Source: Saccostrea echinata (Eukaryota). From it: a stretch of 64,000 nucleotides of DNA. Shown here in pieces: positions 33,856 through 53,000 of this stretch. The stretch spans positions 16,368,001-16,432,000 of the forward strand of contig NW_026889754.1 in NCBI RefSeq assembly GCF_033153115.1, read 5' to 3'. The notes below the pieces were generated by a model, which was given only the letters and a program-made list of their open reading frames with translations, was not told where the DNA came from and did not search any database. Position numbers and translations under genes: made by a program. Positions within the stretch are counted from its first letter, which is position 1. Each line of letters starts with the position of its first letter.

Positions 33856-36800
33856 CATATCCAAAGGTCGAAGATAATAAAAATATTTCATGGCCGATAG
33901 CCCTAAAAAGAAGGAAAAAAAATGTATACTTCATTTGATATTTCTCGATATAGTCAATTAAAGGACATGTATCTAATTAAATTCAGGGACATGTATCTAA
34001 TTTAAAGACATTGTCCTATCTATATCTATTTGTGAAGGAATACATGACATGCTACTTCACGCAAAAGTTTTGTCAAGATTCATTTCCCTTAAGCTAAGTT
34101 ATCACAAAGGTAAAAAAAAAAAGAATTAACAATTAAAAATATTCTGCAACCTATATGCTTTTAACTACATCAGAGAAGAAATTAGTAGTTCAAAATGTAG
34201 TTGTTAATTGTCAGTTGGCCATGAAGAGTGAGATTGATTGTACGTTGTTTTAAATCCGTTCGAGAATTTTTCTCTCATATAGAGACGTCACCATCTAGCA
34301 GTGAGGGTTCTTTATCGTGCCAACGCCTACCGTGACACGGGATCTCGGTTTCTAATGTCTCATCCGAAGGACCTGCAACTTTCACTTCAAAGTGCTGAGC
34401 GCTAGGCAAAGGATTAGTTGCTACCATTTTTTTTATCGACTTAAGTCAATCGCGGCCGAGATTCGAACACACGACTTCTCGATCACGGAGCGAACACTCT
34501 ATCGACTGAGCTACCGTGACAGCATGATCTGTGAGAAAGTTTAAATAAACTGTTTGTAATACTAAATCCATTTCTTGACTGTGTTTTAAGCAAATATCTG
34601 GAAAGTCAAAGATAACGCAGCTAGGTTAAGGACGTCCATGTGTAAACAAAGGAAAATCAGCAGCATATAAACGGTATAATTTTTAAACGACATTTCAAGG
34701 CAATAAAAAATTACTTAAATAGGATCTATATATGGTTCAATTACAACAGTGCTCCGGATCATTTTTCAACAAGGACATTACTGACGTCAGCTGTTTATCA
34801 CGTGACATATCAAAAATAGACAAAACATACCTTCCTTCTTTCAACACAAAAGTTCAAGGATATACGACATGTGTTGAGAATAATGTCTACTACTAATTAA
34901 AAGTCCTAGAATTCCTTAACCTGAAAAGTGCTGGGAGCAAGTATAGCATCCTCGAGAACACAGTCTATTTTAACTTCAAAAACCTTCGACCGATACATAA
35001 TCATGGTATTTACCATTTACTTGCAAGAAAAAATGCTGTTGTAAGACATGCACAAGTTGCTCCCAGCACTTTTCTTGTAAAGAAATACATACCCTCAACA
35101 TATTTATAAAGCATAAGTCCATACATATAAGGTATATCGTTGAACTTTTACGTTTTAGCAGATTCGGATTGCTGTTTATGCAAATGAGCTCATATAAAAC
35201 GCACTGATGATCGAGATCAAGGGCAGATAATTCCACTATTTTGAAGTTAACAAAGCGCGCAAAATTCGACTTTAGAAAGAAAGAACACGTTTCCAAGATG
35301 TATTCATAATATCTTTGGAATAAAAAAAAGTTTAAACTCTTTTTAATGATTTATATTCTTGTTTTCAGGTTGAAAACCAGGACTGAAACTGCAGATTTGG
35401 CTAAACTCTATTATTTCAAGCACTGCTATGAAGGGGCCTTAGTGGGCGTTTCCAGGCTTTATTACCAAAGACCATCGATTTTTTTCTCATGTATTTCAAT
35501 GAATAAACGAAATAAAGTTAAATTGTTGTCTTTGTTATCCCCAAAGGCTTTAATATGGCACGATTCATGGAAGTGCTGGTAAAATTAAACCTTGGATCCA
35601 CCACTCATATTGCATAAAAGAATCATACGTGTACATAAAACTCAAGCTGCAAGTCACATCCCGTACCAAACATTCTAACAAATGCTCATGAGCAGCTCAT
35701 GAGACTCACATGAGAACCTAGTAAGAAATGTATGCAAATTAGGTAGAATTGGATTTTGCTCATGTGCAGATTGTTAGTCTCTGTTAGGGAGGAAAATACG
35801 AACCAAAATGCACATGTGCAAAATTATGCTCACTTGGATGCTCATGAGCAAAAGTCTATTCAATTTGCTCACGTATGAACAGCCTTATATTAAAGATATA
35901 GCATTGGTAGTAATTTTTCTAAGTTCAATTTTCTCACGTGAGCATGAGGTTAGGAAATTGGACATAGTCAAAATTCAGTATTACAGGTAGAACCAAAACC
36001 AAAGAATGACAAGTTTCATTTCCTCATGTGAGCATTTCAAATGCTCACGTGAGGAAATACAATACTTTGTCACTCCAAGCTTTTACAAGCCTTCATTAGA
36101 ATTGCCCATGTGTTAACTGTTAATGCTTCCTGATGATAGCATCACAAATAATTGGGGGCCAGGCAGGAATTTCTTAATTTCTTGAGCTTCTAATCTTCAT
36201 CCCATCATTTTGCAAATGCTTTCCTCTACCTAAACAACCTGCTGTGTCCCCCACAGTTGCTTAAAACTAGGGCAGTATCCAATGAGGGGAGCCAGTCAGG
36301 ATTTGTGCGCACTTTCAGACTAGTTCAAAATTTCAATCCAAAATGTTTGTGAGGGACATGAAAGTATATACCGGTAGATTAATTTATACAGTAAAGAAGT
36401 GAAATATGCTTTGGGAAATACATGTCATCACCATATTGAACTGGATGTCAACATTTTAAAAGCTACAAATGTATCTAATGTCCATGAGATGAGGAAATAT
36501 TTAAGATCAATTACGAATGACCATGATGCAGCCACAATGAAAAAGAACTGTGATATATATATAGGAAAATTTCAAAGATTTGCTGGTATTAAAAGAATGC
36601 TGAGAAAAGGGTAAGTGCATAGGCTTTAATATAATCCCCCTCTCACGTGTGTTAATTATTAATTAATACTTAATTTAGATAGAAATGCAGTATGTTATCA
36701 GTAATTACAGTTTAATAAATGAACATGAATTTACATCATTATTTAATGTAATTAATGTTTATATAGTTCTGAATATAGGATCAAACATATTAAAATCCTT

Positions 36801-39800
36801 AATGTATTTCAAATTCTCTATAGATTCTTTTAAGAACTATAACTATGGTAATTAAGTTAGATTAGGTCAAAGTGTACATAACAGCTCAGTGCAGTAATCT
36901 ATAATTTATCTATGATAAGATAGTTGCTTAATATTGATGCATATGATTTTTTATTGATTGGCCTTTCATGACCAATTGAACCATGAAAAATATAATATTT
37001 ACTATTAATTCAAATTTTTTGCAGATAAAAGTTGCTGATTGAGGGATCTGCAGATTAACCCCGGCCCCTTACATATAGATGGAGTTCTGAAGTTGACACT
37101 CATTTAAAGGAAATGCAAGGAAAAGGGACTTGATGAAATGATTATGATCAATTCTTATGACTGCTGGAATATTTATTTCACACCCAAGTATGATTGCCAC
37201 GCATTCAGGAATTGGAAAAAAATCTACATAGCCTGACATATCAGAGACAACTTTAATCCATCTAGTGCAGTCCAAAACTGTTGACTGGACATTTACATTG
37301 GATGTTCTAGTGTAAATCTACTGGAAATCTAACTTTTTGATAATTTATGTACAATGTGTATTGTACATAATTATACATGTATAATTACGATTAATACAGA
37401 GAAATGTGTTTAATGTAGTATATACTAGTTGTTCATTTAATTTTAATTTTTATTTAAGTTTGAAAAATGAAGTTCACTGAACATTTACGCATGTATTTAC
37501 ATGTTGCTCAAGAATATTTAAAATGTTCAATATTATTGACGAATCATATTTTAAATATACATTTATATATTATATTTGTAATCTAAATTTTATTCTATTG
37601 TTGTTTGTTCAAGTGAGCAATTGTTGCACATGAGTCTAATGAGCCTCATGAGACTAATGAGCCTCATGTGAGCAATATTTTAGGTGAGCAAAATGATTCC
37701 TCACATGAGCAAAAAATGCTCATGTGCAGAAATTTTGCTCACGTGAGCATTTCACCTAATTTGCATGTTAAATTGCACATGAGACTCACATGAGCAACTC
37801 ACGTGAGGAAATCTGGTTAGTCCTCATGTGAGCTGCTCATGAGCAAATTGTGAGAATGGTTTGGTATGGGATATATTCAAGAAATTTTATGAATAATCAA
37901 AGATAAATGACAAAGATATGAACCAGGAATTTTTTTATTCAATTAAGCATAATTTTGTAAATATACAAAAATTAACAAAAAATCAATGAAGTTAATCTCT
38001 ATACAAAATGCTTGTACAGGCTATGACAATAAAAGTCACTGAAATTGCAAGAAAATGAAGAAAAGTGATCAAAATTCAGATCATATCTTTTTTTTCAATC
38101 AATATTTTTGCTGAAAAACAACACTTGGAAGATGAGAGGGAAAAAAAAGTAAATTATTATCATAATAAAAAAATGTTTCGGTAGTGTTTTTAACCCCCCC
38201 AAAAAGAACAACTCGATAAATGAATGCTTCCAACTTTTGGAAAATGTTCAAAAATCAAAATAATTTTAAAATATTTTTTTGGAGATTAATTTAAGAACAA
38301 TCATGGCAGATGTGCAATATCCTGAAGCTGACCTTGAAATAGTTAAATTCAAAAACATTGAAAAAATGTAAGTAAGAAGATCAAGAAAGAAATTTTCTAA
38401 CATTTGGGGTATTTGACAATACAGAGAGAATCATCATGAATTTCTGTAACTTTGCGAAAGTTATAATTGGTCGTTGTACAAAAGATCCAGAATGCATTCA
38501 ATGGTGGTCATCAAAGGAAAATGATAATAGTGCTATTGTAAATGTTAAGTCTTCAAACAAGTCAGCAACATTTAGATATAGCTTTTATAATAGTGTTATG
38601 AACAAATATTCCAAGATGCACTTGCCTTATGATAAATTTGTACGCCAGTTACCACGCGTACAAAACTACTTAACACAACCAAAATACTGGAAAAACAGTA
38701 ACAAAAGTGGACAGAAAAAAGACTTCCTTGTGCAGTTTTCTTTGCAACAATGGGATTCCCTCTCACACAAAGAAAAACTTCGTCATACAATATATGACTG
38801 TTCTCCATGTGAAAATACAAAACTGATAAATTATTCAGTACTTCACAAGTCCGCCACAGAATCAACTGAAAACATCGTGCAAATGTCTAATGAACTTGCA
38901 AATGAAATTGAAAATAAAAACAGTACAGGGGTCAACAAAATATTGAATGTCTTAGAACCAATCTTTGAAAAAAAGTTTCAAACAAACTTGAAATCAGTTG
39001 TTTCTGATAGGTACAACTTAACAGAAAAACTGCCTAGTGAGCAGAAACGCAAACAAAAAATCAAGCAAACACAAGAAAACACAAACAAAATAAACCAAAT
39101 CATAACCAACAATGAAAGTGAGGTTCAAAATTTTCTTGCATCAGGGAAGTCTTACAGTCAAGTTGATAGGGATAGATTGTCCACATTTTTTGAAGCCACA
39201 AATTCAGCAAGGGAGAGAACTGTCCGTGTGTCAAAAAAAATTAAAGAAGGCTTACAAAAGGCAAAAAAACATGTGGGAAACATGGACAACTACACGTTCG
39301 ACAGAGATGGCTTTTTAAAATATATGCAGAATCTTCCATCAGGATCACGGGTTATCTGGCGCTACCTAGCGTTTAAATTTCATGTAAAAAACAAAAAAGG
39401 TCTTGTTCCAAAAAATGCTGGCCAAGTTTTACAAACATTTGCTTGTCAAAATGGTGTAAACACAGATAAATTTAATCAATATCAGCGTGTAAGTGGTAGA
39501 GACTTTGTTCAAAGGGTAAGAAGATCACGACAGAAAATTTACAAATTTATTTCTATTCCAACACCAAAACCAGCCAGAAAATTAAGAGAAGTAGTACACC
39601 AAAAACTAGAAAACAAAGACCTCTACATTGGAGAACAGATTGCCCCAAAAGCTTTCAAATCAAACAAAATCGATACATCAGGTACCCTCGCCACTGTTGA
39701 TTACACTGTATATGGGAGAATGATTCCCCTAAAAAAGATCATAGAACAGATGGCAGAAATTCACAGGGAATACCAAAGAGAAACAGACACTGATGAAAGC

Positions 39801-42800
39801 AAAACAAGGCACCTGAAGATCTGGCATGATCACTCTGATATTCTTAACCACAGCTATATCACCATCATGGTAAGCACACTTTACGACTCTGCCTCCTTCA
39901 TCACAGATGAAGAATACAAGAGGAAGTACCCAGAGCGTCCACCAGCTGATGTTCAAGCAATGGTAGAAAAGCCATTTCTCTACGTACTTGGGCAGTCTTC
40001 TAGCAGTGATGTTGACCAGCTTTCCTACATGCCAGCAAGGGTTGATGACCTCTCGAGTCTTCGGAACCAGGATGGTGACGTCCGGTACATTTTAAGATAC
40101 TTCAGTGGAGACGGCCCCGCCAGACAGTTTGAAGCTGGTCACCAGAGGGGAGGAAATTTCAGTTGTTTATGTGGCATTTGTTCAAAGGACCACATGAATC
40201 TAGAGTGTGCGTTCAATAGTAAAGCTCCAACACTTCAGGAAAGAGTGGAGATTCTTAGAAAAGGAGTGTTATGGAAACAGTTTTCCTTAACGAGACCATC
40301 ACCATTTGCCAATTTAAAAAAAATAGAAATTGTAAGAGAACTCAATGCTAGAGGGTGTGATACAGTAAACAAGAGCAAGGGTGAACTGCAGGAAGAGCTG
40401 GTAAGAACACTCAGAGGGATTCAGAGACCACCAGCCTTCTTCACAACAAGTCAAGATGTGTCAGACCTACTCCAAACTTACGAAGTACCACCAGCTGAAC
40501 CCCTTCATGACATTACGAATATCGTGCAGAACCTAATTACAGAGCTTCCCCACCATATTGATGATGCTGACACAAAGAAAGATTATGAACAGTTTTCAGT
40601 TACCACCATCGGAGACAAAAATCAGCTGAAAGGATCTGATGCCCGTCTTTTTGCAGTGAAGTTGGCAATGTTTTCACACTCAAAGTTCTCAGAGAATAAA
40701 ATTAGTAAGGATATTTATGAACTGTGCACCTGTTCAGTAGAGATAATATCCATCTGCTATAGTCCATATCAACAAAGAACAACCAAGAAAATTCTAAGAT
40801 TGTATAATCTCTGCTTCAAATTCAGCATTCTTTCAAGGACAGTTATCAGCATACCAAAGAAGATGACTACCAGAAAATTCTATGGCTCACATTTCCACAG
40901 CCTAACAGTTCACACCCCAGAAACTTTCAGATTAATTTGTCTGCGCTCCCTGATTCCAGAACAAGAGGAAAGATCATTTGGGGATCTACGAAACATCTCT
41001 CTCAACACAGCTAACAGACAATGTGGTAAAATCATAGACAATGCAGTTCTCAGGTACAATGCACAACAGCTGAATGAAAACAAAAAAGATTATGTTAAAC
41101 ATCAAGACTCGATCATCAGTCACCAAGCCAAACGTCTTCCAAAGACAGGGAACACCTTATTTGATATGGATTTCCTACAAAAAAGACCAACCTTATTTCA
41201 AACCCACTGCCAAAGGATCTCTGATTTCCTGAGTTGTGGTGAGAGCACTTGGTGGTCTATCTGCAGTGATGGCATAATGTTTCATGATGGTCCAGACGAG
41301 CAAGACTTTCAAAGTTATCCACCTCTTAGTCACTTCCGTTCCATGACAGGAAAAGATCAAGAAAGAGTATTAGAGGGGGAATGGCAGAAGTGCATTCAGC
41401 AATATGAAGACTCTGCTCTCAGACTGCCACTCTGCAAGATTAGAATTTTTCAAGAGGGAAAACTTTGCAGAATTGTGAAAAATGATGGTATGTCAAAAGA
41501 TTGTTATCAAAATTATCATCATAAATACTAAATTCAAATTTTCAAAATTTCCTTAAAATGTTAAAAATATTAACATGACCAAAAATCATTAACTAAAGTT
41601 TTGTCCTTTTCTCCAAAATTTATCAGCTGTTCTTAAAAATGACACATAAATGAATACACATTTAGCAAATCCTCCTTTCTTCAGATTTCATTAGAGCGGT
41701 GGAAGAGTACAATAGATTATCTGTCATGAAGGCATCACATACACCCCAGCAGTTGATAGGTTCTACAGCAAACAAGGCCAGCAACACAGGTATTCCTACA
41801 ATTAATATGCATACTTTATTATTCATTAACTTGTATTTTGTACTTTTACGTGTGGATATATCATAAGTATAATATTATGTATCAATTATGTCATCATGAG
41901 AGCTCCAAAATTGTGAAAAGGTGTCAGATTTAAGTGATACCTACAATTTTATTCTTGACAATTGTAATTTTGTTTTATTCTGTCACATTATGTGTGACAT
42001 ATACATTTATCTAGACTAGGATAACTTTGTGGTCACAATATGACTTACAAATTAAAGCATTAGCAACTAGAACTGTCACTGATAGGACTAATTACCCCCC
42101 CCCCCCAGGCAACTCATTTGAGGACATCCTTTAAACAAGAGACCCATGGGCCACAACACTCACCTGAGTAACTCTGGCCATGCTGTTCTTCACTATATTT
42201 CCCCTTTTGTAAAACCTAATGTGGCCCTAAACTACTTCCAGGGTTCAGGATTTGAACAATTTAGTATCTACACCACCCAAGGATGCTTCCACATAATTTC
42301 AGCTTTTCTGGCCCGTGGTTCTTGAGAAGAAGCTTTTTAATGACCTCACCCTACTTTTGTCTTTTCTTGATTATCTCCCCTTGGAATGGGGCTTGACCCT
42401 TCATTTTAACAATTTAAACTCCTCTTTACCCAAGGATGCTGTGAAATAAGTTTGTTAAGATCTGTTCATGTGTACCCTTGAGATAAACATCACTGATATG
42501 TATATAGACATAGGTAGATGGTCAGACAGACAGACTTTCTGATTCCACTTATGCCCCGAGACATTACTTGTCAGGTTATTATCATTATATTTTGAAATCT
42601 TATCTGTTTAAGGATCTAAAAAGTCACAAAGTACCAGATTGACACATGATGATGGTAATGATGGTGGTGATGGTCATGGTGATGATGGTGATGGTAATGC
42701 TGGTGGTGATAGTGATGATGGTGATGATGGTGTTGGGGATGATGGTCATGGTCATGGTGTCGGTGATGGTCATGCTGGTGGTGATGGTCATGATGGTATT

Positions 42801-45800
42801 GGTGATGATGGTGTTGGTGATGATGGTGTTGGTCATGGTGTTTGTGATGTTGGTGATGGTCATAGTGTTAGTGATGGTGTTGGTTATGGTCATGGTGGAG
42901 ATGATGGTGTTGGTCACGGTGTTGGTGATGGTCATGGTAGTGATGATGGAGATGGCATTGGACAAGAGACAGGTATTTCTACAAATAAGCAAATTTACAA
43001 TCAGAACCAGAGCATAGACACAAGTATCAAGATATACATGTATTTCATTTATCATCTTATTTATATATGAGTAATTTTTCAAAATAGTCTCCCTAAATGA
43101 AGTACAAAAGAAAGGCTTAGGAAAATCTGAAGGCTCCCACAGGTCTCAAGATGAAAATGGAAATGTACAAACCAGAGGTATTAAATTAAAAACATTTGAA
43201 AATTCAACAAAAGACCAATAGGACACAGAGCCTACCTGAGTCACTTTGGCCTTTTGCTTTTCATCAACAGATTTTTTTTCTAAATATACATGTGCAAAAT
43301 TTAGAACATGCAAAATTTAGAACATATAATCTTAATAATCTTAATTATCTCCCCTTGAAAGAGGATGTGGCTTTTTCTTGGGTAATTTTGAATTTTGAAA
43401 TTGGCCCTATGGTTCTGGAGAAGAAGCTGAAAATTTCAAAAGCTTACAATGACAATGCCGACAATAGACAACAGACAAATATTGATCCTATAAGCTAACT
43501 TAAACCTTCTGCTCAGATGAGCGAAAAAAATAAAACAAAAATTAACTTGAATATCTCTTTCACTTTCTTGAGAATGATTATCAGGTGTTTCAATTAATAT
43601 CTCCTATAAATTAACATATCAATTAAATAGTTAAATACCAGTACAGATAGGTTCCTTGTCAGATTATCATCATATATCTTACAAGGCCATTCTTAAAAAA
43701 TTGTTTGTTTGCCCTCTCCCAACCGACTGACTAAAGACGACTTGACTTAGAACTATTTTTTACCTCTAGGAAACGATATATATTTTTTTTATTCCTGGAT
43801 TTGTTCATCCTGTCCATATGTATGTTTAAGTCTTCTAGGGGAAAAAAATTTTCTCACCTACTTACTGACCCAATTTCTTACCCTGAGTTGGGAGAGGGCA
43901 AACAGACATTATTTTAAAGATTGCCTAATCTTATGTAATGCAGAATCTGTAAAGTCACAGATTACCCAAATGACAAATTATGACGGTGATGATGGGCATG
44001 GTGATGATGGTGGTGATGATGGACTTGGTGATGATGATGGTGACGATAATGGTGGTCAAAGGCATGGTGATGATGGTGGTGATGATGATGATGGCATTGG
44101 ACAAGAGAAAGGTATTTCTACAAATATGCAAATTTACAATCAGAACCTAAACATAGACTAGATTACCAAAATATATTTCATGTATTGTCTGATAAGAATA
44201 TTTATCGATGAGTGTTATTTTAAAACTTTCTCCCAGATGAAGTACACAAGAAAGGCTTGAGATAATTTAAAGGATTCAACATGTATTTTACCTTGATGAT
44301 AAGATTATTATGTTTTAAACAAAACTGTATTTATAAAATGTTCTATACATTGACACTTTCAATGGATAAACACCAGTGATGATATGTCTATAGATAGATG
44401 GTCAGACAGACACGCATACTTTGCGATTCCAGTTTAGCTTTCAGATTTTTATTGTCAGGTTATCATCATTATATTTTATAATCAAATCTATTGCAGAAAA
44501 GTCACAGATTACCCGAATGACAAGTGATTGTGATGATGAACATGGTAATGATGGTGGTGATGATGGGCATGTAGATGGACTTGGTTATGGAAGTCATGGT
44601 CATGGTGGTAATGGTGTTGGTGGTGATGGTAGTGATGGTGTTGGTGGTGATGGTGTTGGTGGTCATGGTGGTGATGGTGTTGGTGGTCATGGTGGTGATG
44701 GTGTTGGTGGTCATGGTGGTGATGGTGCTGGTCATGAGGGTGATGATGATGTTGGTGTTGGTCATGATGTCGGTGATGGTCATGATGTTGGTGTTGGTCA
44801 TGATGTCGGTGATGGTCATGATGTTGGTGATGGTCATGGTGGTGATGATGGTGATGGCATTGGACAAGAGACAGGTATTTCTACAAATATGCAAATTTAC
44901 AATCAGAACCAGAGCATAGACACAAGTATCAAGATATATTTCATTTATCCTCTGATAAGAATAGTTATCAATGAGTGTTATTCTTAAACTTTCTTTCAGA
45001 TGAGGTACACAAGAAAAGCCTGGGAAAGTTTAAAGGCTTGTACAGGTCACAAGATGAAGAAGACAGTGAACAACCCTTAGGTATTTGTAGAAAAAAAATA
45101 ATTCAGAAGTCTTCAGGCATGTTACAACTTATAGGTATAGTAACTCTCCATTATAAAGAAATCACTTATAAGAGAAGCACTTGATAATAGGAAAACACAT
45201 ATATGAATCTTGGCAAAGAATAACACTATGTTCTTTATAAAAAAATATATATATATAAAGAATCTCTGTTTAAGGGAAGCAAAATTTGAAGATTCTGTGC
45301 TTCCTCATAACCAAGGTTAACTGTATATGTACTTTCCTACCAAAAATTTTTATCAATTGTTTAAAAAGACATTCAATTAATGAGTTTCTATTAATTTTAC
45401 CAAGATGAGATAGGCAAAGAAGGCATTTGGAAATCAAAGGGTATCCCTATATCACATAACGATTACTTTGAACAAGACAAAGGTACTTCTTACACTGAAA
45501 ATTGTAATCTTAATGGTACCAAGACTTTGCTTTTTCCTCTTTGCTAAAAACATACAATTTTCTTTTCTAGAGTTTTTTTTTTATTCTTCAGTTTATCTGG
45601 ATAAAGAACACAAAGATGTTGAGAAGTCAGGGGGTTTCCATAAGTCACATGAAGGTGAAAAAGTCACAGGTAAGTCTAAAAATCAAAATAAATGGCAAAA
45701 TTTAAGGAGTAACATTAATATCAGTACCAGCAAAGCTAACAAGGCTCCTATGCTTACAGAAACCCTTTTTTACTATATTTTATCTTTAAATTTTACCTAG

Positions 45801-48800
45801 TAAACAATGTTGACTCAAAAGGAATAGGAAATTCGGCGGGTTCCCTAATGTCACAGTCAAACAATGGTGGTGGACAAGATACAGGTAAAGCTAAAAGCAC
45901 ACAATAAACAAATAAAAGAATGATTAAAGTAAACAACAGGAAAATCATCTTGACATTACTCATACAATTTAACTTTATACTCATGTCTTAATGCAAACAA
46001 GATTTTCAAAACTGTTCAAAGAAAGTGCTCTTTAATACATATCAAGTTAAAATAAAAATATTTTAAGACAATTAATGCACATGATCCTTGGGTTTGTTAT
46101 CTGTTACTAGTTATTGGAAAAAATAACAATTTAAAGGTTTTGTTGGTGACCGTCTACAGAGATATATTGAGTTGATCAATATGATATCTTACACAGCAAG
46201 GTGAGGCAGAGCCATCTCTAAGATTGATAAACCCAATACCAGTGATTTTTTTTGGGTCAAAATGCCACCGATATTCGTCTGTTTCCCCTCACAAAAATTA
46301 GCTATTTTTTCCCAATTATTAGTATATTTTTCCCAATTTCAAACTTACGAAAATTATGTTTTAATTTTGAACAAAAGTTGCTAAATTTGCTGACACTAGA
46401 GTAAATACGTTTTTATACTTCAAATCCATGCATATTAATGAATGTGTAAAACAATGTAGATATCCATACAAGCAGATAAGTAGCTTATAATATTCTCAAT
46501 GAATTGGTCAATAGTTCCCAGATACAAGTGATATTGCATGTTGACATAATGATTTTGGTTTGACCGCCATTATTACACAGAGGGTCAGGCTAATAACAGG
46601 AAATTGACAACACATAGGGTTTCACTAAAATCAGGAAAAAACAAACAGTAGACTGTTTACTTGATTATCCATATAAGACAGTTTACTAGATTATGAGTCT
46701 AAATGCTGTTTTTGTTGTTTTTTTTAATGAAATTAGATAAAGCAATTCCAAGAAAATAGAAGCTACAAGATGTGACTAATATAAGCCATGTTCACATTCA
46801 ATAGAATATTGATGTTAATATTTTTAAATTATTATTATTTGAATTTAAATCAAATTCAAAGTTAAAATCAAACAAAATCTGTTGTTGTTACTTAGTTTGA
46901 TTACTTTATGTATTTTTTAGCATTCTAATTTACTATAAATGATTTTTCCCAATTTAAAGAAAATGTCGCTAATTTTTTCCCAATTCAAAAGGAGGGGGTG
47001 GTGGTTTAAAAAACAAAAAAAAATCACTGAATACATGAAATGTGGGTAGTCACTAACAAAACCTTATAAGTATTAATGTTGCTTGTATAAATCTTATCAA
47101 AATCATATAATGGGTCAATGAAGAAATAAGAGGCACCATAGCAACTGACTATCAAAAGAAATAATAATAAAAAAAAAAATATTTAAAAAACAATTTATGT
47201 AAATTGTAAACTGTTGAAGTTCTTAATATATTTTCTCTGATTTATTCCAGTGTTTTTATCTTCCTTAACAAAAAACAGAATAACTAGTACCTGATGCCAT
47301 TCTGTTTTCTCTCTATGTTAGACTTGCCTTTTCCAAAGGAATGTTTCTGAAAATATGTCTTAACAATAAATAAAAGGCATATATTAGCTACTGATAGTTG
47401 GCATGTTCACTCTTTAATTACAATTTTATGATTTTTAGCAAAAATCATTACAACACTATGATACTAATTTTTAGTTCTGGAATTTGCAGGTGTAAAATTA
47501 CCTTCAGGGGTTTGTGTTGAAAAAGGGCAGCCATTGCAGAACAAGCGATTACGAGAATTAGCATCAGTTGTGAGCTGTAATGCAGGTAAATATAAATAAA
47601 TCTAAAAACATAATAAATAGCACTGTGTATACATGTGCATATTTGTTATTCTTAGATTGAAGACAAAAAATGCACTTTTTCATCTGTTTTTGCAATGGTA
47701 CATGTATTAAAGATTTATGTTTCAAATGTCTTTCAGTCTTTAAGACTTTATTTTGTATGTTTGTTGTTTTACATCCCTCTCAAGAATTTTTCACTCATAT
47801 GGAGACATCTCCACTTCCTGGTGGAGGGCTGCAAATTTATACCTATACTTGACACTCAGGGCCTTTGAGCAGTGAGGGATCTTTTTCGTGCCAACACTTA
47901 TTTCGTTTATACAGTCTCATCCAAAGGACTGGTCTCCACATCCCGCGGTGGATTCAAACCCATGATGTAAGGATCAGGTCCTTACTCCACAACTCTCGAG
48001 CAGATGCTCTAACCACTGTGCCACGTAGGCAACCTTTACGACTTTGAAAAAATTTTTTGGACAAGTAAAAATTTTGTTGGAACAAGAAAATTTCAGTTAT
48101 TTGTCGGAATGGCCAAGTAAGAGGAGAAAGCCTGAATATAATTATGCAACCCTGAACATAGAATTATCACAGACATTGTGAGAATGGTTTATAATGTTTT
48201 TGATATTCTCCAGATTGTTCCAATGAGAAAAAACCATGTAGGCGTAGGCTTTTTACAGAGGGACCAGGTATCTACTATACTTTTGTGATCTTGTTGAATA
48301 ATGAAGTTTTTGAATTTTTAATTTAAATCAAGTGTACTGTTGATAGACAGTAAATGCTCACAGGATATTTTGTTTACCTTAGATACAGAATCTACCGTCT
48401 ACATGGTGAAAGCCCTCCTGCCTAGCAATGACCCAGTATTGGCCGAATTCATCAAGTACAGAAGACTCCTGAAAAATGATAAATCATTTAAACAATCATA
48501 CGAGCGTGCATTAGCAAAACTACAGACTTCCATCAGCAAAAAACACAGGGAGTTGCTGGAAAGTAAAGAGCAGGAAAAATCTGTCCCTCTGATTAAAATG
48601 GCAGAGAAACTGTTACTTCGTTGGAACATTTATTTTTAGATGGTTAAGTCTTATGATCAATTTTCAAAGAATTTACGTGGATCTCTAAAAATGCCTTACT
48701 TATTAAGCACGATACTGTTTTTCCTAATAATTTATTACATAAGAAGTTTTTAAATGTAACACTGCATGGGTATACTTTATCTGTTTGTCCATTATGTATT

Positions 48801-50088: not shown

Positions 50089-53000
50089 CCACCACTTGCC
50101 GGTGGAGAGCTGCAAATTTTGACCTATACTCAGCACTCAGGGCCATTGAGCAGTGAGGGATCTTTTTCGTGCCAGCACCTTCTGCAACACGGGACCTCAG
50201 TTCATACAGTCTCATCCGAAGGACCCGTCTCCACATCCCACAGTGAGATTCCTTACTCCGCGACTTATTGTGTTATGAAAAACACTCCTTAATGTCGATT
50301 AAGAGTTCAACTTCATGACTGTGAGTGTTCGCCAGTCAATACCTCCAATTTAATAACAGCAACATGTGTTTGTATTGTGTATTCACGGCATGAACTTTAC
50401 ATTTTGACAAAAGAAAGGTCCAAAACCCTCTTCAACTTTTTTGACATGATATTGATACCTGCCGTGTTCTACTTCTGTCTTGGTGGGCAATTCTAGAGGA
50501 GTTTCTACCAAGTGTTCGATGTAATGATCAACTGCATTGAAAACAGATACTCTGCTGTGATTCATATTTTAACAGCAGTAAAACAAAACAACATTTGAGT
50601 ATATGATTTTTTGTTAACTGGCAAAACACTTGTCCGCAGGCAGGTACTAGTCATCAAATAACTTGCCTGCCAAACGAAATTGGTTGTCCCCGGCATTGGG
50701 GAATGCTATTTGTCTAGCCCTTCACCCAGAACTTTTGTAATTCCTTTGATTTTCAACCCCAATCATAACACACAGTTCATTTTTTTAGGAAAAAAGGAGG
50801 GTTTTTGCAATTGGCAATGGGACATAAATTTGGCCCTACATGGGGCAGTGGAAAATTCCTGTATTCAGCAGATTTAATAAAATTGAATGTATAAATATTA
50901 ATTATTATATTATTATTATATTTGTCAGGATGTAGGTTCATGGATAAGCATGACCTGTAAAATACAAGAACATTGGACCCCCCAAATGCTACGCATTTAT
51001 TGACAGGGTTCAAGGTCAACATGCTTTTTATTTAACCAAGAACCAAACTGTTTGCCTGAGGCCATTAGGCTGAAGGAGAACAGTTTGGTTTGAGGGTTGA
51101 CAAAATGCACTTTGCCCAAGAACTCAGTCAATAAATGTTTTGTTATACCTTTTATTTATTTTGATTCTTTTTGACATACAGTACATGTATGTTCTAGCTT
51201 CCGTGATGTAAACTGATGTTACACTCGGTCAATTCCGTTACTGTTCCAATAAATGCAAATGAGATTTAGCTATCATTCAGCACATTGTGTGACGTAAGCG
51301 TTCCAATATCTAACTCTGCGGTCAAACATCTTTTTTTTCTAATCGCTCAGTAAAACATTGCAATTGATAGACTTTTTAAGCATAGATTGGTATAGAGAAA
51401 CTTTTTTTTAAAAGGTATAACAAGAAGTTATATTTGACATTAATAAAATAATGCAGTACTCTTTGTGAAACATGAAATAAAAATATTGTGTATTAAAGCT
51501 TTAACATGTTTTATAATGTCAATGTGCGACTTCAGTTATAAACAATTGAAATTGATGCTGAAACACACACCAAAAATATATATATCCATATAAAACAGTG
51601 CTTGTTCAAGTTGTTGTTACTTAAAATTTCATTTTTTTTTTTTTTAGAGTTGCACTTGTTCATATTTTTGTGCTCTTGTGCACCATCAGTACAGTGAATC
51701 TCAGACTCCCATGGGGTATTTCATTTAAAGTGCAACAATAAATGCTAATCTTGTGCAGAATCCTACAAAACTAGACTTCCCCACAGGAGTTCGCAATTTT
51801 ATCAATAAAGTAGGGGTGAAACGATACACCTCCTTCACGGTTCGATACGTATTGTATAATTTTGTCTCGGTTCGGTTATTTTCGATACGATACATTTTGA
51901 TAAAAGGAAACAAATTCTATGTTGTTTTATGCTTTCTTTTTCTAAATCTAGTCACATATTTTACGAATTTTATTTGCAAATTGACTAGAAGAAATTGATT
52001 GAAATTATTTGACTGTCAAAAATTATTTTACAACCTATCAGTCATCAAAAATTTACGTTTTCTATACTTATTTATTCTGAGTAACGTGTTATACCTTATG
52101 CCAAACCCGACTGAATAACGATCCCGACCGAAAAATGAACCGAACCGAAAATTAGAGATTTTGCACCGTGTATCAAACCGAGAAAAAATACCGCGGTGCA
52201 TCGATACCGCGGTGAACCGTTTCACTCCTACAATAAAGTCAATAAAAATCACTCGATTGACCAAGCAATGAGCTATGCGTTAGCATAGCGAACAGTTGCA
52301 TTCCTGTTCGCTATGCTAACGCATAGCTCATGACTTGGTCAATCGAGTGAATTGATAAAATTGCGAACTCCTGTGACTTCCCATATGGGGCCCCAGTATT
52401 TAAAACTTTTTCAATGATGATAAACTTGAGTGTTCGGAGTATTATAATAACACGAAATATCACTTCATCTTCTTTTATGCAATAACTAAAATGTACAGTA
52501 TATGCTATCACACTATAAAGAAATCATACAACTTCTTTTTAAAAGAAGAACCCTCAAAAAGAATATGAACCACGTGGTCTGTAACAATATTCCGGCGAAT
52601 TTTCTTAAAATTACGCATTTCATCACGGTATAACAGTCTAAATGAAATTGTAAACTTACAATGAAACTCTGTCCTGCAAATATTCGGCATCTACCATCAT
52701 GTCAGGCAACAATTTTGTTGTAAATTCCATCAAGACACTGGAAGAAACAAGCTTTTCCCACGCACCTGCCAGCCCCAGTCGTGACGAGACGGTGAAAGCG
52801 CCGAGCCGACGTAGATCAGCTCCAAACGACATTATGTAATTTCATAGAAAATACATTTATGGAGCTGATTTAGCGATCAAAACGAAACAAACAAATAACA
52901 TTTATAAGAAACCATACAAAACAAATCTTTAAAGTATAGATAAATAAGTATATAAAAATAAAACACGTATTAAAGTTTTCTCATGAATAATTATAAAAAT

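Follow-up and report, generated by a model that had tools for sequence, protein, structure and literature searches.

A divergent transposase with a RAG1-type predicted fold in a 16-kb transposon of Saccostrea echinata, probably a branch of the CACTA/Mirage/Chapaev and Transib clade

A stretch of 64,000 nt from the genome of Saccostrea echinata (contig NW_026889754.1, positions 16,368,001 to 16,432,000, hereafter the window), which contains no N, carries a large transposon delimited by two 27-bp terminal inverted repeats (TIRs) and, inside it, an open reading frame (ORF) of 1031 codons that runs from ATG to stop without an internal stop. An original prediction, made from the letters of the window, had drawn attention to the spacing of acidic, cysteine and histidine residues in the encoded protein, which resembles that of the recombinase RAG1, and had proposed that both share a fold and possibly a hairpin-forming chemistry. 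The analysis described here leads to a reading with a probability of roughly 0.8: the product of the ORF is the DDE transposase of a transposon of 16 kb that moves by cut and paste, and this enzyme represents a divergent branch of the clade formed by CACTA, Mirage and Chapaev (CMC) together with Transib, known as the "CMCT" clade.

The ends of the element are well defined. The consensus of the TIR, CGCAGCTAGGTTAAGGAC(G/T)TCCATGTG, has 536 matches at <=3 mismatches in the 923-Mb genome, compared with 0 for a reversed-pattern control, and the termini read CGCAGC...GCTGCG in all copies. A duplicated dinucleotide flanks 20/20 of the small copies described below and 4/4 of the large ones; its sequence varies, with TA as the commonest, and the target site duplication (TSD) is thus 2 bp long. 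Most of the TIR matches form pairs about 1.04 kb apart, which are non-autonomous miniature inverted-repeat transposable elements (MITEs), as exemplified by the copy at C1:9604167-9605208 (loci L001-L020). In the 20 MITEs sampled, the TSD can be any dinucleotide (TA in 7/20 and TT in 4/20), and what they share with the large element is just the termini (the first 18-25 bp) and a short subterminal motif. Their pairwise identity of 88-99%, with a mean of 92%, indicates that the MITEs are older than the large copies.

Besides the copy in the window, three other large copies were found, each of about 16 kb and 98.6-99.7% identical to it. The window copy measures 18.4 kb because it has received copy-specific insertions. 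One of these, a nested element, lies about 565 bp ahead of the start codon of the transposase. Its imperfect inverted ends, some 45 bp long, start CCC(G/A)TACCAAAC, and it contains many palindromes of the type CTCACGTGAG; a second stretch is also missing from the three other copies (Table 1). The transposase ORF is intact in the window copy and in the copy at C33:7795206-7796870 (99% amino acid identity), and it is broken by stops in the copies at C5:2.48 Mb and on C27. More distant intact paralogues, with 50-71% identity, occur in the genome. Near-identical large copies together with two intact ORFs give the picture of a recently active family, and this transposon family has probably been active in recent times, in agreement with what the original prediction had suggested from the intact residues of a single copy.

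Table 1. Coordinates of the element, its transposase ORF and neighbouring features, as positions in the window.
Feature	Position	Strand	Remarks
Left 27-bp TIR, CGCAGCTAGGTTAAGGACGTCCATGTG	34616..34642	+	TSD AA at 34614-34615
Nested unrelated element, 2.2 kb	35660..37870		Absent from the three other large copies, which align to 34616-35659 and from 37871
Transposase ORF	38436..41531	+	1031 amino acids
N-terminal part, residues 1-279	38436..39272	+	See text
RNase H-like catalytic core, residues 457-566	39804..40133	+	beta1-beta2-beta3-alpha1-beta4; model secondary structure, integrase alignment, conservation
Codon of D465, in LKIWHDHSDIL	39828..39830	+	First acidic residue
Codon of D559, in RYFSGDGPARQ	40110..40112	+	Second acidic residue
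ZnC2-type cysteine pair C577/C579, putative ligands	40164..40172	+	Conservation; paired by hhalign with C(2)C of classical CMC
C577/C579/C582 in FSCLCGICSK	40164..40181	+	Codon of C582 at 40179-40181
SAP-like helix-turn-helix segment, residues ~624-661	40305..40418	+	Between the Cys pair and H691; Pfam SAP and profile matches in the family
Helical ZnH2-like module, residues 688-884	40497..41087	+	E688-P-L-H691, H821, H826, E842, E845; model, conservation, hhalign
Codon of H691 ("LH" motif), in EPLHD	40506..40508	+	
Codons of H821 and H826, in HFHSLTVH	40896..40898 and 40911..40913	+	
Codon of E845, in PEQEERSF	40968..40970	+	Candidate for the third catalytic carboxylate
Tandem-repeat open frames	42624..43082 and 44421..44987	both	Gly/Asp/His-rich and Thr/Ile/Met-rich
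Small ORF	48340..48639	+	Ends in ...AEKLLLRWNIYF
Second stretch missing from the three other large copies	51812..52230		
Right 27-bp TIR	53038..53064	-	One G/T difference from the left TIR, recurring in other copies; TSD AA at 53065-53066

The residues listed in the original prediction (D465, D559, C577/C579/C582, the LH motif at 691, H821, H826 and E845) all stand at the positions given there, in an uninterrupted frame, and their significance was assessed in homologues. Those that a word search found are proteins without annotation from oysters, mussels, a scallop and a pearl oyster, which show 40-76% identity with end-to-end coverage. An exhaustive profile search collected 7223 representative clusters at E<=1e-3, of which 1277 reach E<=1e-30, and two amphioxus proteins are among the named members; the family is therefore large and animal-wide. 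Its range covers bivalves, amphioxus and possibly cnidarians. In a conservation alignment of 55 sequences (A2), where the mean column identity is 21%, eight residues are conserved at 98-100%: D465 (51/52), D559 (55/55), C577 (54/55), C579 (53/54), H691 (55/55), H821 (55/55), H826 (54/55) and E845 (55/55). Such near-invariance at so low a mean identity means that the motif pattern did not arise by chance.

One of the listed residues did not stand as a ligand. C582 is present in close relatives of this copy and is replaced by H, P, K, R or S in other family members, so the conserved cysteine pair is C577/C579, which takes the form CxC in the bivalve subgroup and C-x2-C in distant members. At position 690, a leucine is found in 44/55 sequences and a methionine in the other 11. 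E842, one helical turn from E845, is invariant as well. The region between the cysteine pair and H691 is SAP-like: Pfam SAP matches 4/23 family members (best E 7e-6), the family profile has the SAP domain 1zrj (E 0.011) as its sole and weak match in the PDB, and in the window protein itself the SAP match falls below threshold. Otherwise, the window protein has no match in Pfam and none among PDB sequences. The family also has a conserved C-terminal WW...FHDGP domain and an N-terminus of its own.

The structure of residues 280-1031 was predicted with AlphaFold2 by using alignment A2, with a mean predicted local distance difference test (pLDDT) score of 92.9 and a predicted TM-score (pTM) of 0.85. 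In the model, D465 lies in beta-1 and D559 right after beta-4 of a beta1-beta2-beta3-alpha-beta4 unit, H821 and H826 share one helix, and E842 and E845 stand at the start of the next, an order that is the same in RAG1. A Foldseek search of the PDB returned 47 matches at E<=1e-3, all of them RAG1, amphioxus BbRAGL or HzTransib, with 4wwx_B as the best (E 9.3e-10; TM 0.47-0.55 on target length) and Hermes next at E 0.01. VIA-align aligned model residues 84-605 with RAG1 486-1004 with a Z of 17.7 and a root-mean-square deviation (rmsd) of 4.5 A over 432 residues, and gave a Z of 14.7 for HzTransib, 14.2 for BbRAGL, 11.3 for the P element and 7.0 for Hermes. A Foldseek-independent search of 48,161 chains placed RAG1, BbRAGL and HzTransib on top again. 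Retroviral integrase cores align from model residue 179, which corresponds to integrase residue 57, and model residue 186 (D465) faces integrase residue 64, the position of the first catalytic Asp in HIV-1 integrase. The RNase H/ZnC2/ZnH2 fold foreseen in the original prediction is thus supported by the model, with an identity to RAG1, ProtoRAG and Transib of just 9-14%.

To weigh this resemblance, two comparators from the same genome are available, a RAG1-like protein (RAG1L, locus L021) and a classical CMC transposase (L046). The genome holds 56 matches to Transposase_21 (CACTA, PF02992) and 25 overlapping matches to DUF1258 (PF06869); 25 classical CMC ORFs were aligned (A3), and one of them, L046, was folded with a pLDDT of 77.7 overall and >85 in the core. 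The L046 model matches RAG1 459-1004 with a Z of 17.9 and an rmsd of 5.2 A over 456 residues, and a RAG1-type fold is non-discriminating for this reason. The spacing is D-94-D-18-C-2-C-242-H-5-H-19-E in the window protein, D-109-D-19-C-3-C-208-H-5-H-20-E in RAG1L and D-87-D-19-C-3-C-213-H-4-H-20-E in the classical CMC control. The RAG1-like spacing claimed before was therefore borne out against a RAG1L of the same genome, and the ordinary CMC control has it too. From the Cys pair to the histidine of the LH motif, the window protein has 112 residues, compared with 68 in RAG1L and 76 in classical CMC, and the extra 36-44 residues are SAP-like.

At the level of profiles, hhalign aligned the family with the 25 classical CMC proteins at E 2-5e-4, with a probability of 33-46% over 370-490 columns, and paired D465, D559, C577/C579, H691, H821/H826 and E845 with the D, D, C(2)C, MH, H(3)H and FE of CMC. 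With a 48-sequence profile of RAG1-like proteins, taken entire or by sub-region, the E values of 0.02-0.24 were not significant, which leaves the family nearer to classical CMC. The comparison of the family profile with the single RAG1L sequence was not significant either, so the residue equivalences to RAG1 are not derivable from sequence. Since the classical CMC control has an equal Z and a like spacing, the likeness to RAG1 is uninformative on a tie of this particular gene to RAG1: the window transposase is no closer to RAG1 than its ordinary CMC relatives are.

This agrees with the literature, in which the motif set D-D-C(2)C-LH-H(3-4)H-E is a published hallmark of the clade of CACTA/Mirage/Chapaev and Transib/RAG1 (PMC12730594, PMC4079192). 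The motif-based tie of RAG1 and Transib to the CMC clade is credited to Yuan and Wessler (2011) in these two papers. Chapaev transposases have been described with "C(2)C, LH, and H(4)H" (PMC4079192), and the predicted structure of the plant CACTA protein TnpD was earlier likened to RAG1 (bioRxiv 10.1101/2024.04.02.587720). The original prediction overrated the significance of a resemblance to RAG1 that is the usual mark of an already known clade of transposases.

The two comparator loci deserve a description of their own. The RAG1-like gene lies at C5:333805-335655 (+), with an identical copy at C8:9399179-9401029 (-). At locus L021 (ORF 394-3420), its 1008-amino acid open frame contains both a RING finger and a complete RAG1 core (PF12940, 306 bits) with CDGMG, VDEK, C-x2-C, H-x4-H and SEGNE motifs, and it is most closely related to the RAG1-like proteins of Pinctada, Mercenaria, echinoderms, a hemichordate and amphioxus. 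Further RAG1-like fragments are found at C33:22.79-22.83 Mb. The CMC control (L046:1514-4264, C12:20.99 Mb) has a C-terminal BAH-like domain (model residues 751-905), with a Z of 10.9 to the BAH domain of DNMT1 and 10.4 to ZMET2, and the model points to the fusion of a chromatin-reading module with a transposase of the CACTA/Mirage type.

Four lines of evidence together place the protein in the CMCT clade: its motifs, its fold, the 2-bp TSD and a profile match in which the motifs are in register. The DDE triad lies on an RNase H-like fold, the cysteine pair begins 18 residues after D559 where the clade has C(2)C about 19 residues after the second D, an LH and an H-x4-H precede the candidate catalytic Glu, and the TSD is within the range of 2-4 bp reported for CMC elements (bioRxiv 10.64898/2026.08.26.747230). 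Classical CMC transposases (CACTA/EnSpm, that is Transposase_21, and Mirage, that is DUF1258, an equation made in PMC3985635) have in common with the window protein the triad, C(2)C, [LM]H and H(3-4)H, a near-identical spacing and a RAG1-like predicted fold. The differences lie in the ends (CAC...GTG in classical CMC, CGC...GCG here), in the CxC form of the Cys pair in the subgroup of the window protein, and in its interval from the Cys pair to LH, which is about 40 residues longer and SAP-like.

Several observations weigh against this placement. The CA...TG (CAC...GTG) termini, which are said to hold for the clade "in most cases", are replaced by CGC...GCG. The sequence similarity to classical CMC is weak, as the hhalign probability given above indicates, and the third carboxylate could be E842 in place of E845. 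Furthermore, none of the Pfam models of the clade, PF02992 (CACTA), PF06869 (Mirage), PF06918 (Chapaev) and PF12940 (RAG1), matches the family. Because the models of CACTA, Mirage, Chapaev and RAG1 all miss it, the family is regarded as a divergent branch of the clade. In the Protein Atlas, the homologue P0019 shows sub-threshold values of 0.80-0.88 to SAP, Transposase_21, RAG1, DUF1280 and DUF1258 clusters, which serve as leads only.

How new this branch is depends on the lineages already named. It is a serious possibility, if short of even odds, that the family corresponds to one of those in Repbase or Dfam (Mirage, Chapaev/Chapaev3 or an animal EnSpm group) and that the Pfam models, based on nematodes or plants, are too narrow to detect it. 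The size of the family, its presence in well-mined genomes (oysters, mussels, scallop and amphioxus) and the fit of the motif set and the 2-bp TSD with CMC all speak for such an identity. The TSD reported for Mirage is 2 bp. On the other side, neither PF06869 nor PF06918 matches any of 23 members (0/23) at E<=1; the 25 loci of the genome scan with PF06869 leave out this family, and PF06918 has no match in this genome either. Chapaev and Chapaev3 agree exactly with the window protein in the C(2)C, LH, H(4)H set (PMC4079192) and also have animal hosts that include amphioxus, but the Chapaev hallmarks, namely CAC...GTG ends, TSDs of 3-4 bp (TWA) and an N-terminal Chapa zinc-finger domain, are not seen here. 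In sequence, the N-terminus shows one conserved H-x4-C-x2-C-x11-H motif only, and no cysteine-rich Chapa-type N-terminus is evident.

More tentatively, and on balance somewhat doubtful, the family could be an undescribed CMCT lineage of about superfamily rank, comparable to Plavaka, ESTA and Lanisha. The marks proposed for such a lineage are the CGC...GCG ends, the 2-bp TSD, the SAP-like insert in the zinc module and the N- and C-terminal domains of its own. Precedents for deep CMCT branches are given by Plavaka A, ESTA and Lanisha (PMC12730594), which have the same motifs, 2-bp TSDs and non-CA ends; PlavakaA, for instance, has a TSD of 2 bp and TGT...ACA ends (PMC12730594). These are fungal or plant lineages, and they were compared with the family of the window by description only.

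A closer tie to RAG1 is improbable. The family would then be a member or a sister of the Transib/RAG1 lineage, nearer to RAG1 than ordinary CMC transposases are, and hence able to inform on how V(D)J recombination arose. In the structural searches, RAG1, BbRAGL and HzTransib do come first; RAG1, ProtoRAG and Transib have in common with the window protein an architecture that extends from the dimerisation or pre-RNase H region through RNase H, ZnC2 and ZnH2, with a like spacing of acidic and putative zinc-ligand residues, and the H-x4-H is RAG1-like where the classical CMC control has H-x3-H. However, H(4)H is known in Chapaev too (PMC4079192), and the CMC control equals the window protein in its match to RAG1 (Z 17.9 versus 17.7). 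The profile comparison with RAG1-like proteins stays at a non-significant E of 0.02-0.24, in contrast with 2e-4 for CMC. PF12940 and its sub-domain models match neither the window protein at E<=10 nor the 23 members at E<=1, and in the genome scan they match other loci only, yet they detect the real RAG1-like gene of this genome at 306 bits. Moreover, the TSD is 2 bp instead of 5, the terminus reads CGCAGCT instead of the heptamer-like CAC(A/G)GTG, and the RING and N-terminal zinc domain of the RAG1 type are lacking in the window protein. It is very unlikely that the transposase gene has been domesticated or has died and no longer belongs to a mobile element. The 2.2-kb nested insertion upstream of the ATG could disturb its expression, but the gene is enclosed by 27-bp inverted ends that are intact and have a 2-bp duplication at their outer sides, and four copies at different loci, 98.6-99.7% identical, with stops in 2/4, are what a decaying mobile family would show, unlike a single conserved host gene.

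Coming back to a CMCT transposase, a mechanism can be outlined by analogy with its better-known relatives. The acidic triad D465/D559/E845 would bind two divalent metal ions, while C577/C579 and H821/H826 may hold a structural zinc and so link both halves of the insertion domain, the part that C727/C730/H937/H942 play in RAG1. The enzyme would nick at the CGCAGC terminus, and the freed 3'-OH would attack the opposite strand, so that the flanking DNA would end in a hairpin, as it does with the RAG, Transib and hAT enzymes. The excised element would then integrate with a 2-bp stagger. For the window transposase, we infer two-metal catalysis, the zinc bridge and the hairpin chemistry from these relatives; we know of no biochemical demonstration of hairpin formation by CMC enzymes.

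Other features of the transposase gene and its surroundings were noted. Residues 1-279 have no Pfam match; they comprise a family-conserved start, MN(F/Y)CN(F/Y)AKV, then the H-x4-C-x2-C-x11-H motif (H118, C123, C126, H138), which from its sequence pattern may be a small DNA-binding zinc finger, and then a predicted coiled region. A C-terminal extension of the transposase by splicing is possible. At its end, the small ORF at 48340-48639 (Table 1) is like the C-termini of three Mytilus homologues, P0020, P0026 and P0030 (...AQKLLDHWGxYYF), and this likeness fits a transposase gene that runs on by splicing into downstream exons. No long ORF was seen downstream of the transposase ORF in the element, where no search aimed at a RAG2-like partner was made; tandem-repeat open frames occur there. 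Sequencing runs are listed that contain 91-97% of the words of the transposase ORF, and some of them are guessed to be RNA.

The outcomes of this analysis confirm that an architecture of the RAG1/Transib type is found throughout the CMC clade, as is already in the literature. They have no special bearing on how V(D)J recombination originated; on that question the genuine RAG1-like gene at another locus of the genome is of more relevance. What emerges is a large animal transposase family that Pfam models do not cover, with defined ends, a defined TSD and apparently intact recent copies, and its practical value is modest. The family lends itself, as a candidate, to the first biochemical work on an enzyme of the CMC type. 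If it is a new lineage, with two intact copies about 99% identical that may be active now, it would offer a natural and probably functional enzyme for the first biochemical and structural work on a CMC-type transposase, and could serve to examine whether the nick-hairpin chemistry is ancestral to the clade that comprises CMC, Transib and RAG.

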